IMG/VR virus record: IMGVR_UViG_3300021440_000013
Span: 1 to 64,000 of that record
DNA length: 64,000 nucleotides
Reading direction: 5' to 3' (one strand)
Position numbers and translations under genes: made by a program. The notes beneath the pieces were generated by a model. It was given only the letters and a program-made list of their open reading frames with translations, was not told the DNA's origin and did not search any database. Below, in pieces: positions 2,117-35,263 of this stretch. Position 1 is the first letter of the stretch, and every line of letters begins with the position of its first letter.

Positions 2117-2160
2117 ATCCTGTTTCTAAAAAAAGATTGGCCATGTACATATTACTTGAC
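2117..2160 (+). promoter_or_regulatory. Putative early (virion RNAP) promoter of chmA
   Basis: ATCCTGTTTCTAAA...CCATGTACATATTACTTGAC; resembles the phiKZ early TATATTAC motif and recurs at 35221 and 37923. Confidence 0.6.
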
Positions 2161-17978: not shown

Positions 17979-17989
17979 TCACCACTAAC

Positions 17990-18022
17990 GAGATGAGAGA
18001 GGGTTTAGCCCTCTCTCATCTC
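17990..18022. terminator. Terminator-like hairpin
   Basis: GAGATGAGAGAGGG-TTTAG-CCCTCTCTCATCTC. Confidence 0.75.
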
Positions 18023-18059
18023 AAGTCAGTAAATTCTTTTTAACCTCTGAGATAGTCTG

Positions 18060-18260
18060 GTGGAATGAATCTACTCGGCTAACACTCACTAGCTGAAACA
18101 CTGTGTTAGTTTTCTTACTAGAACGCTAGCACAGGAGCATGAGTATTTTTTCATACGTAAGAAAACAATGCTGCACGTGTCAGCGGCACGTGCAGCAACC
18201 TCCCTAGGGTCTACATCATTAGGGAGTGTAAACTTTTTTACCCTTTACGAAAAGAAGTTT
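18060..18260 (+). ncRNA. Candidate structured RNA upstream of tnpB (omega-RNA-like or regulatory leader)
   Basis: Stems CTAACAC/GTGTTAG, GTTTTCTTAC/GTAAGAAAAC, TGCTGCACGTG/CACGTGCAGCA, CTCCCTA/TAGGGAG. Confidence 0.45.
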
Positions 18261-18263
18261 GGT

Positions 18264-19424
18264 ATGGCTAAACCATCTAATCGTATTATCAGAGGTTTTA
18301 AGTATTGTATCCATCCCTCGGAGGAACAAAAGGTAGAGTTAAATTCTATTTTAGAAGACTGCCGACGCATTAGAAACAAAGTCAGCAAAGTCATGCATAC
18401 GTTAATTCCCAGAAATCAAAACTGGGAAGACGTCTTTAAGCTAGAAGATGCACTTAAAGTTGCCCAAGGAATTAAAACCCAGTTCTTTAAAACAACAAGA
18501 GCACCCGCACGTTCACTCACAACAGCCATCGAAATACTTTACCAGCTTCATAAGAAAGCGATTAAGTTGCGTGTTAAGCCGCCAGGCTACAAACACGAAG
18601 AAAGTCACTTGGCGGTTCACTACCCACACGAACTCTATAAGCTCTGTGGCGATCATCTTACACTCTCAGGTATAACGGGCGATATTCGTATAAACCTAAG
18701 CAGACCTATGCCAGATGGTAAAGTTCATAGAGTCGTGGTGAGTCGCGATATCTCTGGAAGGTACTTCATTTCGTTTACGATCTGTTTTGTTAAACAGATC
18801 GAACATGGTGATAAGACCATCGGTCTAGATCTCGGTGTCGATGACCTTGTCACGACGTCTGAAGGGGTTCGCTTCGAAGCTAAACTCAAGGCAACGGATG
18901 TTCAGCTTAAGTTGAACTGGTATTTCGATCTTCTTAGACGCAAGACAGTGATGTCTAGGTCTTGGAAAGCGCTAAAAGAAAAGATCCGCAAATACAAAAC
19001 ATGGGTGATGAATACTCGGATCGAACAGTTCTATGAGATCGCCACTGCTGTTGTAAAATCAGCATCAGCGATTTCGATGGAAAGGCTTAACATCACCAAA
19101 CTTTTGACTCAGCCGCGTCGGGCTTTTCAGATTTCACACTCTGGCTGGAATGATTTGAAACGAATATTGGTTGCTAAAGCCGAAGAAGCACAGATCGTGA
19201 TTGGATTTGTAGGGCAGTATTACCCAAGCACTAAGACGTGTTCACGTTGTGGCTATGTTTTGCCAAAATCACTTCCTCTCACAATTCGTTCATGGCAGTG
19301 TCTTGAGTGCTCTTCAATCCATGATCGCGATGTTAACGCCGCGATAAATATTCGAGACTGTCTTTCGAGCTGGATAAAACGAGGCGTGTATAAAACCCAA
19401 CATAAAGTTGTTCTCTTAAACTAA
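18264..19424 (+). CDS. tnpB: TnpB-family (IS200/IS605) RNA-guided RuvC endonuclease
   Basis: N-terminal FKYCIHPSEEQ HTH, GLDLG (RuvC-I D), SMERLNI (RuvC-II E), STKTCSRCG..WQCLEC Zn ribbon, DRDVNAAINI (RuvC-III D); ATG 18264 likelier than 18168. Confidence 0.92.
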   Translation: MAKPSNRIIRGFKYCIHPSEEQKVELNSILEDCRRIRNKVSKVMHTLIPRNQNWEDVFKLEDALKVAQGIKTQFFKTTRAPARSLTTAIEILYQLHKKAIKLRVKPPGYKHEESHLAVHYPHELYKLCGDHLTLSGITGDIRINLSRPMPDGKVHRVVVSRDISGRYFISFTICFVKQIEHGDKTIGLDLGVDDLVTTSEGVRFEAKLKATDVQLKLNWYFDLLRRKTVMSRSWKALKEKIRKYKTWVMNTRIEQFYEIATAVVKSASAISMERLNITKLLTQPRRAFQISHSGWNDLKRILVAKAEEAQIVIGFVGQYYPSTKTCSRCGYVLPKSLPLTIRSWQCLECSSIHDRDVNAAINIRDCLSSWIKRGVYKTQHKVVLLN

Positions 19425-19455
19425 CGATCCATAGGCTTTGAGGCCTATGGATCGT
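19424..19455. terminator. Hairpin immediately after the tnpB stop
   Basis: ACGATCCATAGGC-TTTGAG-GCCTATGGATCGT, perfect 13-bp stem; no T tract. Confidence 0.5.
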
Positions 19456-35220: not shown

Positions 35221-35263
35221 ATCCTGTTCCTAAGAAAACTCAAACATATATATCCTACTTGAC
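35221..35263 (+). promoter_or_regulatory. Putative early promoter
   Basis: ATCCTGTTCCTAAG...CATATATATCCTACTTGAC matches the motif before chmA. Confidence 0.5.

Follow-up and report, generated by a model that had tools for sequence, protein, structure and literature searches.

Four of the five tnpB genes of a phiKZ-like jumbo phage are directly preceded by a conserved, structured unit, and we put at about even the chances that this unit is an omegaRNA-like scaffold, a putative partner RNA of TnpB that has been relocated 5' of a vertically inherited phage gene. The window analysed is 64,000 nucleotides long and makes up the first 64 kb of a 216,876 bp virus genome with direct terminal repeats (IMG/VR record IMGVR_UViG_3300021440_000013). 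Positions are those of the window unless the genome or a contig is named, and Table 1 collects them. A sequence-only reading of the window had placed a multi-stem RNA upstream of one tnpB and had pointed out that a scaffold at the 5' side of the gene would be atypical.

The genome has a phiKZ-like jumbo phage neighbourhood, with a split RNA polymerase beta subunit, a DprA-like protein and a T4-like DNA polymerase that is at most 42% identical to that of any deposited phage. Its five tnpB paralogues (T1-T5) all lie on the plus strand, three of the five within 15 kb, and the RuvC triad is intact in every one. T1-T4 are 34-55% identical among themselves, and T5 is 24-29% identical to T1-T4. The T1 product matches Cas12f1-like_TNB (PF07282) at 1.7e-18, PHROG 506 at 1e-59 and, with 28 bits, just below the cut-off, OrfB_IS605 (PF01385); it also matches ISDra2 TnpB at 1.4e-24, in an alignment that runs across the three RuvC motifs (GLDLG, SMERL and HDRDVNAA in T1; GVDVG, GTEHL and HDRDENAA in ISDra2). 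The catalytic residues D189, E273 and D356 are invariant in T1-T4. Judged by its domains and the RuvC D-E-D triad, the T1 gene is assigned to TnpB, the IS200/IS605 OrfB-type RNA-guided nuclease. Alignment of the paralogues favours ATG 18264 as its start, giving 386 aa; gene callers put the start at an in-frame ATG at 18168 (418 aa), which is the base of hairpin B.

The 217-kb genome contains no TnpA, neither a Y1 (PF01797) nor a serine recombinase (PF00239), and the tnpB 3' ends hold no counterpart of hairpin B, so that there is no matching hairpin pair at both ends. On these two grounds a TnpA-dependent IS200/IS605 or IS607 transposon was ruled out.

Table 1. Positions of the features discussed, in window coordinates unless the genome or a contig is named.
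Feature	Position	Strand	Remarks
Terminator-like hairpin of the upstream 260-aa gene	17990-18003 / 18009-18022	+	inverted repeat; left neighbour of the unit
T-rich motif GTAAATTCTTTTTAACC 5' of the unit	18028-18047	+	read by eye, unscored
Whole unit, ~190-nt multi-helix, S1 to S1	18056-18245	+	fold z, nhmmer, covariance model
S1 5' strand GGTGGAA	18059-18065	+	partner 18236-18242: 5 Watson-Crick and 2 G.U pairs
S2 hairpin TCGGCTA/TAGCTGA	18075-18081 / 18090-18096	+	
CTAACAC/GTGTTAG stem	18079-18085 / 18103-18109	+	mutually exclusive with S2
Core-model match, T1 unit	18097-18197		5' of tnpB; 22.8 bits, top of the 64-kb window; best outside the unit 15.0
S4-type hairpin (extended in T1), then AGCA motif	18100-18134	+	MFE fold and covariance-model alignment
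10-bp stem GTTTTCTTAC/GTAAGAAAAC	18109-18118 / 18157-18166	+	perfect complement
Hairpin B, 11-bp stem TGCTGCACGTG/CACGTGCAGCA	18169-18179 / 18187-18197	+	most conserved helix
S7 hairpin CTCCCTA/TAGGGAG	18200-18206 / 18220-18226	+	
Conserved 3' motif GTAAACTTTTTTACCC	18227-18245	+	includes S1 3' strand (18236-18242)
Segment between S1 and ATG, 21 nt	18243-18263	+	SD region; guide position if the unit is an omegaRNA
tnpB T1	18264-19424	+	386 aa
T1 stop-codon hairpin	19424-19455	+	probable terminator or 3' end
tnpB T2	genome 85047-86198 (L003:1486-2637)	+	
Core-model match, T2 3' end	L132:139-227 (genome 86142-86230)		overlaps ORF end; 22.2 bits
tnpB T3	genome 94157-95305 (L004:1495-2643)	+	
tnpB T4	genome 80542-81690 (L005:1495-2643)	+	
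tnpB T5	genome 212498-213691 (L006:1486-2679)	+	
Core-model matches, three tandem units after T5			3' of tnpB; 17.6-19.6 bits
Core-model match, L130	L130:7194-7276		3', 33 nt past the stop of the P0007 tnpB; 23.6 bits
Promoter-like motif sites	window 2128-2160, 35231-35263; genome 70134, 87057, 101045, 101756, 121236, 187237, 216318		

A structured unit 5' of T1-T4

Folding, one of the checks proposed with the sequence-only reading, set the region well apart from its shuffles. The MFE of 18040-18270 is -80.6 kcal/mol, against -55.1 +/- 4.5 kcal/mol for dinucleotide shuffles (z -5.6), none of 200 of which was as good, and the unit itself (18056-18245) reaches a z of -6.7 against shuffles. The terminator that had been read at 17990-18022 is indeed an inverted repeat at those positions. 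The 11-bp stem is present as hairpin B, with compensatory changes among the copies of the unit, and CTCCCTA/TAGGGAG is present at a position where every unit has a hairpin. Two further stems were read correctly as sequence and are less secure as structure: CTAACAC/GTGTTAG exists but competes with TCGGCTA/TAGCTGA, and the 10-bp stem, although a perfect complement, excludes the hairpin at 18100-18134, which both the MFE and the covariance-model alignment prefer. ATAGTCTGG, the supposed near-match to a late motif, is present at a single site of the 217-kb genome, and we found no recurrent motif to which it corresponds.

T1 is the most divergent copy of the unit and has competing pairings. Three partners suit its U-run equally well: GGUGGAA of S1, the 3' arm of the 10-bp stem and the SD-proximal AAAAGAAG. 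Pairing of S1 is energetically free, the unit reaching -70.6 kcal/mol with or without forcing. In the alignment, the 3' arm of the T1 10-bp stem falls on that of hairpin A in the paralogues, and the position of S2 resembles that of a T4b stem, ACGGCTGA/TCAGCCGT (the TCTACGGCTGAC stem), which T4a does not have. By eye, the T-rich motif GTAAATTCTTTTTAACC in front of the unit resembles both the motif at the unit's 3' end (18227-18245) and the last codons of the tnpB ORF of a more distant phage (L130, below).

Alignment of the regions upstream of the paralogues revealed an element common to T1-T4 and not to T5. An nhmmer profile search of the whole 217-kb genome found the unit at five places, all directly 5' of T1-T4, and nowhere else; T4 carries two tandem units (T4a and T4b) that are 85% identical. 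The orientation and the spacing to tnpB are the same in every copy. The distance from the unit's end to the start codon is 7-21 nt in T1-T4, T4a preceding instead the leader of the next unit.

The shared parts of the unit are a closing stem (S1), S4, an AGCA motif, hairpins A and B, a variable hairpin and S7. The common form of S1, in most copies, is GGTAAAAA/TTTTTACC; T1 has GGTGGAA/TTTTACC and T2 has ATATAGTAG/CTACTTTAT; equivalent closing stems were found in T2, T3, T4a, T4b, the first T5 unit (T5a) and L130, that of T2 differing in sequence and still complementary, and its single mismatch is a Watson-Crick pair in the related phage R. The S4 loop GTTAA[GC]T is conserved in T2-T4 over stems that covary, as from CAG/CTG in T4a to TGG/CCA in T4b. 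Hairpin A, GGTTTTTC/GAAAAACC, with a U-run as its 5' arm and an A-run as its 3' arm, is kept in T2-T4 and in phage R. Hairpin B follows it directly as CTACACGCGG...CCGCGTGTAG in T2-T4, with compensatory changes in T1, T3 and phage R. The variable hairpin lies before S7, and at the S7 position every unit has a hairpin whose stem sequence is different each time. A T-run ending in TAC closes the units of T1, T3, T4a, T4b, the T4 orthologue in phage R, T5a-c and L130.

The comparison of homologous loci that had been named as a check on the RNA thus found shared helices with compensatory changes across T1-T4 and phage R, on about seven independent copies, so that the statistics are thin. The annotated helices contain about ten G.U pairs and essentially no A.C on the plus strand, which fits an RNA read in the direction of tnpB; comparing the MFE of whole units on the plus and minus strands gave a mixed result.

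Selection on the unit and the ends of the genes

An exhaustive profile search of 1.8 billion representatives returned one cluster from outside in the T1-T4 clade (P0007), below which scores drop sharply to the T5 orthologue (P0008) and generic TnpBs. Word-based searches with T2 and T3 led to orthologues in phage R, which has a T4-like gene (74% aa identity) and a T2-like gene (78%) at the same loci, among neighbour genes that are 51-85% identical. Since loci and degree of identity both match those of the neighbouring genes, these tnpB genes point to vertical inheritance, and T2 and T4 at least are, on this comparison, fixed, vertically inherited loci. The unit is kept 5' of both orthologues. 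Its 5' location, as described in the sequence-only reading, therefore holds for four paralogues and two phage R orthologues.

Between the two T2 loci the unit is 87.6% identical, the ORF 73.3% and the third codon positions 46.4%. It can be seen from this pair that the unit is under stronger nucleotide selection than the ORF. Of its 29 changed columns, 22 are unpaired and seven fall in five changed pairs, two of them compensatory, three one-sided yet still paired and none broken, a count that leans towards the structure because the structure was fitted to the same two sequences. The model-fitted alignment (A5) contains reverse-strand palindrome matches and was left out of the pair counts.

The constraint extends beyond the unit into the gene. 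Identical codons make up a raised 0.68-0.73 of the positions at which the T2 or T4 orthologues agree in amino acid within the first 32 codons, and 0.38-0.50, which is background, within the last 64. Between the orthologues the T2 ORF has no change in its first 29 nt, and these together with the block equivalent to S1-to-ATG contain a single change. The raised sharing indicates nucleotide constraint on the 5' side that runs into the start of the ORF, and the background level of the last 64 codons indicates that no overlapping RNA constrains its 3' end.

Each of T1-T4 ends in a hairpin that abuts or spans the stop codon (for example at L132:189-224 and L134:190-220). In phage R the structure of the T2 and T4 stop hairpins is kept, and not their sequence, through compensatory changes (GGGC/GCCC to GAGC/GCTC; GAGATGGG to GAGCTGGG). 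Contigs from an RNA library end about 20 nt before this hairpin at both T1 and T4, which, together with the conserved structure, fits a terminator. The 3' ends of the ORFs give no sign of an overlapping canonical omegaRNA.

The RNA data are assembled contigs that carry neither strand nor transcript ends, from a library of a kind that probably misses small RNAs, and in them the metatranscriptomic depth is 32.9 over the upstream gene, 11.3 over 17982-19399, 2.7-4.4 downstream and, at the polymerase gene, 20.4; the depth of a DNA run is even, at about 52. At the T4 locus, 80173-81672 is covered in the RNA run at 16-20 and the preceding neighbour at about 150. A single contig of similar depth places the unit and the ORF together on one RNA-derived contig. 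A JGI contig (L129) and the Logan contig of run X2 share a T-rich stretch of 27-28 nt that is joined at 17982 and absent from the genome. The junction lies 8 nt from the hairpin at 17990-18022, and the extension could be an A-rich tail on a minus-strand RNA that ends after the 18022-17990 hairpin.

A recurrent promoter-like motif, TAAA...TATATAT-N2-TACTTGAC, was found at a minimum of ten mostly intergenic sites and is probably the early-promoter consensus of the phage. One copy stands directly after the T2 stop-codon hairpin, where it is conserved in phage R, and the motif is absent from the T1 unit. TTTTTAC was rejected as a general promoter, being only about 2.5-fold enriched and mostly inside genes.

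The family is rare: in the collections searched it occurs in one phage, one close relative and one distant relative. Searches of the phage collection and IMG/VR by DNA, TnpB or neighbouring proteins gave no close relatives, the 41 matches of a hairpin-B pattern in IMG/VR are all unrelated, and a longer pattern in JGI metagenomes returned only the same genome and unrelated bacterial genes. Rfam gave nothing at gathering score in the window and, at the five loci, matches at chance level at E<=5, TD-2 excepted. A group I intron or IStron was likewise rejected, with no Rfam match at gathering score or at E<=5 and a unit that is intergenic after a terminator and tandemly duplicated. Three independent Logan contigs of phage R (L143:1-134, L142 and L144) start at the same base inside hairpin A of the T4-orthologue unit, as is expected if tandem or repeated units break the assembly there too.

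Related cores 3' of tnpB

From T2, T3, T4a and T4b only, without T1, we built a covariance model of the S4-A-B core and ran it with filters off. Table 1 shows that it ranks the T1 unit at the top of the window and also finds matches 3' of tnpB in L130, after T5 and at the end of T2. Those in L130 and T5, at 17.6-23.6 bits, are moderate evidence for a related core: reverse-strand matches around true units reach 24-28 bits, a palindromic hairpin and its neighbour earning much of the score. The 3' ends of T1, T3 and T4 score 7-9 bits, which is background, and with default filters the model found no match over 534 kb of 65 IMG/VR tnpB loci.

L130 comes from a more distant phiKZ-like phage, in which tnpB and its 3' unit are an insertion relative to the present genome. 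The L130 unit closes on AAACTTTTTTACCCT, the sequence that also terminates the T1 unit (15 bases are the same in T1 and L130), and its MFE fold closes with GGGTAAA/TTTACCC. Where L130 has tnpB and the 3' unit (L130:5903-7508), the present genome has a 105-nt spacer (genome 97241-97345); conversely, genome 93346-95386, which holds a divergent gene, the T3 unit and tnpB, corresponds to 77 nt at L130:2610-2686.

The T5 array consists of three tandem units of about 212 nt that begin in the last T5 codons (L139:98-741, genome 213697-214340). It resembles the T1-T4 units in architecture and looks like an omegaRNA-type array. The start of the unit is kept on the 3' side of an orthologue with 86% identity; in front of that orthologue the flanking sequence is unrelated as far as about 12 nt from the ATG. 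A related core adjoins tnpB in L130, T5 and L140. In the third T5 unit the 11-mer GCGCAAAGCAC has become GTGTACAACAC at both of its two occurrences, which points to alternative pairings or to gene conversion.

The 3' end of T2 scores 36 bits against Rfam TD-2, a family without known function whose gathering score is 48.7. The first two hairpins of this module are not conserved in the 78%-identical phage R orthologue, so that it is probably a decaying remnant or a chance match.

Function of the unit and comparison with known systems

Three observations lead to the omegaRNA-like reading: an intact TnpB needs a guide RNA, the 5' unit is the only conserved structured candidate nearby, and the core model finds matches 3' of tnpB in L130 and T5. 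A fourth is that the predicted S1 would bring the 3' terminus of the scaffold next to its 5' part, as in ISDra2. On this reading the unit (18056-18245) would be made on the plus strand together with tnpB, and S1 would join the 5' A-rich strand to the 3'-terminal UUUUUUAC, closing a junction that holds S4, hairpins A and B, the variable hairpin and S7. TnpB would be expected to bind the unit, with the 16-20 nt after S1 (18243-18262) occupying its guide channel. The family would then accompany one clade of catalytically intact tnpB in phiKZ-like jumbo phages.

The guide is where the original proposal of a 5' guide scaffold fits least well. The unit is conserved, structured, linked to tnpB and under stronger constraint than the ORF, but the guide position, 18243-18263, is T1's own SD and start region. 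The canonical TnpB guide is supplied by read-through into flanking DNA and drives transposon homing. Here the segment after S1 is not a 3' guide copied from flanking DNA, as it is the gene's own SD and start codon, and BLAST of candidate guide segments against the phage genome gave no match beyond chance, so that the suggested search with the 3'-terminal ~20 nt yields, in that genome, no second site. An SD and start codon are an odd choice of guide, unlike one that targets DNA. An own-locus guide cannot direct homing into an empty site, and flank-directed homing would not be the function. With such a segment in the guide position, the likeliest uses are autoregulation of tnpB, in which TnpB loading on its own 5' UTR would feed back on translation or processing, or, alternatively, a fixed guide matching its own locus. 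The most specific form of this proposal is that a clade of intact TnpB in jumbo phages of the nucleus-forming type has a 5' omegaRNA whose guide is its own translation-initiation region, for autoregulation or for cleavage of sibling tnpB alleles in co-infecting phages. We regard this form as unlikely; were it true, an RNA-guided nuclease would be wired unlike either transposon homing or CRISPR.

The main rival, a serious one, is a cis-regulatory 5' leader that acts on the translation or stability of tnpB, any guide RNA then lying elsewhere or being absent, and we consider it rather unlikely. The alternative partners of the T1 U-run (the 5' strand of S1, the 3' arm of the 10-bp stem and AAAAGAAG) suit a switch, which is what makes a leader the main rival; the unit also ends 7-21 nt before the start codon, constraint runs into the first codons, and unit and ORF share one RNA-derived contig. 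However, a multi-helix structure of 190-230 nt kept through 34-55% amino acid divergence is large for masking an SD, a leader would not be expected to be duplicated in tandem as T4a and T4b are, and the core also lies 3' of tnpB in L130 and T5, where a leader role is impossible. Moreover, the intact nuclease cannot do without a guide RNA, for which the neighbourhood offers no second conserved candidate.

We think it improbable that the unit is a relic or DNA-level feature, either the 3' omegaRNA or right end of a lost upstream element or a single-stranded DNA end for a TnpA acting in trans. IS608-type elements target TTTAC, and the units end in TTTAC, a TTAC-like target motif; they stand in tandem arrays at T4 (two) and T5 (three), the L130 tnpB ORF ends in a sequence resembling the one in front of the T1 unit, and the core model gives the T2 3' end 22.2 bits. 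This T2 module is, however, not conserved in the orthologue, the genome has no Y1 or serine TnpA and no matching hairpin at the other end, and T2 and T4 are syntenic in both phages, hence not recently mobile. The arrangement is moreover found in four old paralogues and a second phage, under purifying selection and with compensatory and G.U changes. An ordinary cluster of terminators and promoters, or an independent phage small RNA without a link to TnpB, is very improbable. Hairpins abound in the intergenic regions of this phage, among them the terminator of the upstream gene at 17990-18022, and several are followed by T-runs, but the family is found nowhere else in 217 kb, its orientation and spacing to tnpB are constant, the recurrent promoter-like motif is absent from the unit, and the best match elsewhere in the window has 15 bits against 22.8 for the unit.

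If the omegaRNA-like reading is correct, a guide gene can be uncoupled from the transposon end while the nuclease is retained, and phages have their own use for TnpB, for example regulation or competition between phages. The locus offers compact natural pairs of TnpB and RNA, and the scaffold arrays of T4 and T5 bear on the passage from omegaRNA to tracrRNA and CRISPR arrays. Should the unit prove to be no more than a leader, it would still cleanly exemplify a phage 5' UTR structure under strong selection.

A large structured guide RNA encoded upstream of a nuclease gene is known from IscB, whose omegaRNA is the HEARO RNA. The present unit shares that arrangement; unlike it, IscB is a protein of the Cas9 lineage, the guide of HEARO RNA is at its 5' end, and Rfam HEARO has no match in the window or at the five tnpB loci. 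To our knowledge, all descriptions of TnpB omegaRNAs to date place them at the gene's 3' end, and as far as we know a 5' scaffold that abuts the start codon of an intact, phage-fixed tnpB would be new among them.

In IStrons a group I intron lies 5' of tnpB (PMC10690162). They resemble the present loci in having a structured RNA 5' of tnpB and a short structured 3' end; the unit differs in being too short for a group I intron, in having no intron match, in lying intergenic after a terminator and in its duplication at T4.

The ISDra2 omegaRNA is the closest point of comparison for the fold: its nucleotides -6 to -2 pair with -102 to -106 in a pseudoknot, which joins the guide-adjacent end to the 5' part of the scaffold (PMC10097598). 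In the present unit the predicted S1 (18059-18065 with 18236-18242) would do the same. Both are long structured scaffolds co-inherited with an intact TnpB (here all five units, at four loci, and the two phage R loci adjoin tnpB), and the related core 3' of tnpB in L130 and T5 adds to the likeness. In contrast to an ISDra2-type omegaRNA, the unit lies 5' of tnpB and not at the ORF 3' end or right end, it is followed by the gene's own SD and start codon and not by flanking DNA, there is neither a TnpA nor a pair of left and right ends, T2 and T4 are not mobile but hold syntenic positions in two phages, and the unit has no sequence or Rfam match.

Altae-Tran et al. 2023 (PMC10691335) described, in nuclease-dead clades, TnpBs that are immobilised, with omegaRNA-like genes standing separately and with omegaRNA arrays. 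Like these and the TldR repressors, the phage loci combine a non-mobile tnpB with a conserved long non-coding region, would have a guide RNA gene decoupled from transposon ends, and carry whole scaffolds in tandem, twice at T4 and three times at T5. Those exapted clades have lost the nuclease and are linked to sigma factors or other partners, whereas the present proteins have an intact D-E-D triad, their host is a jumbo phage and the unit abuts the start codon of tnpB.
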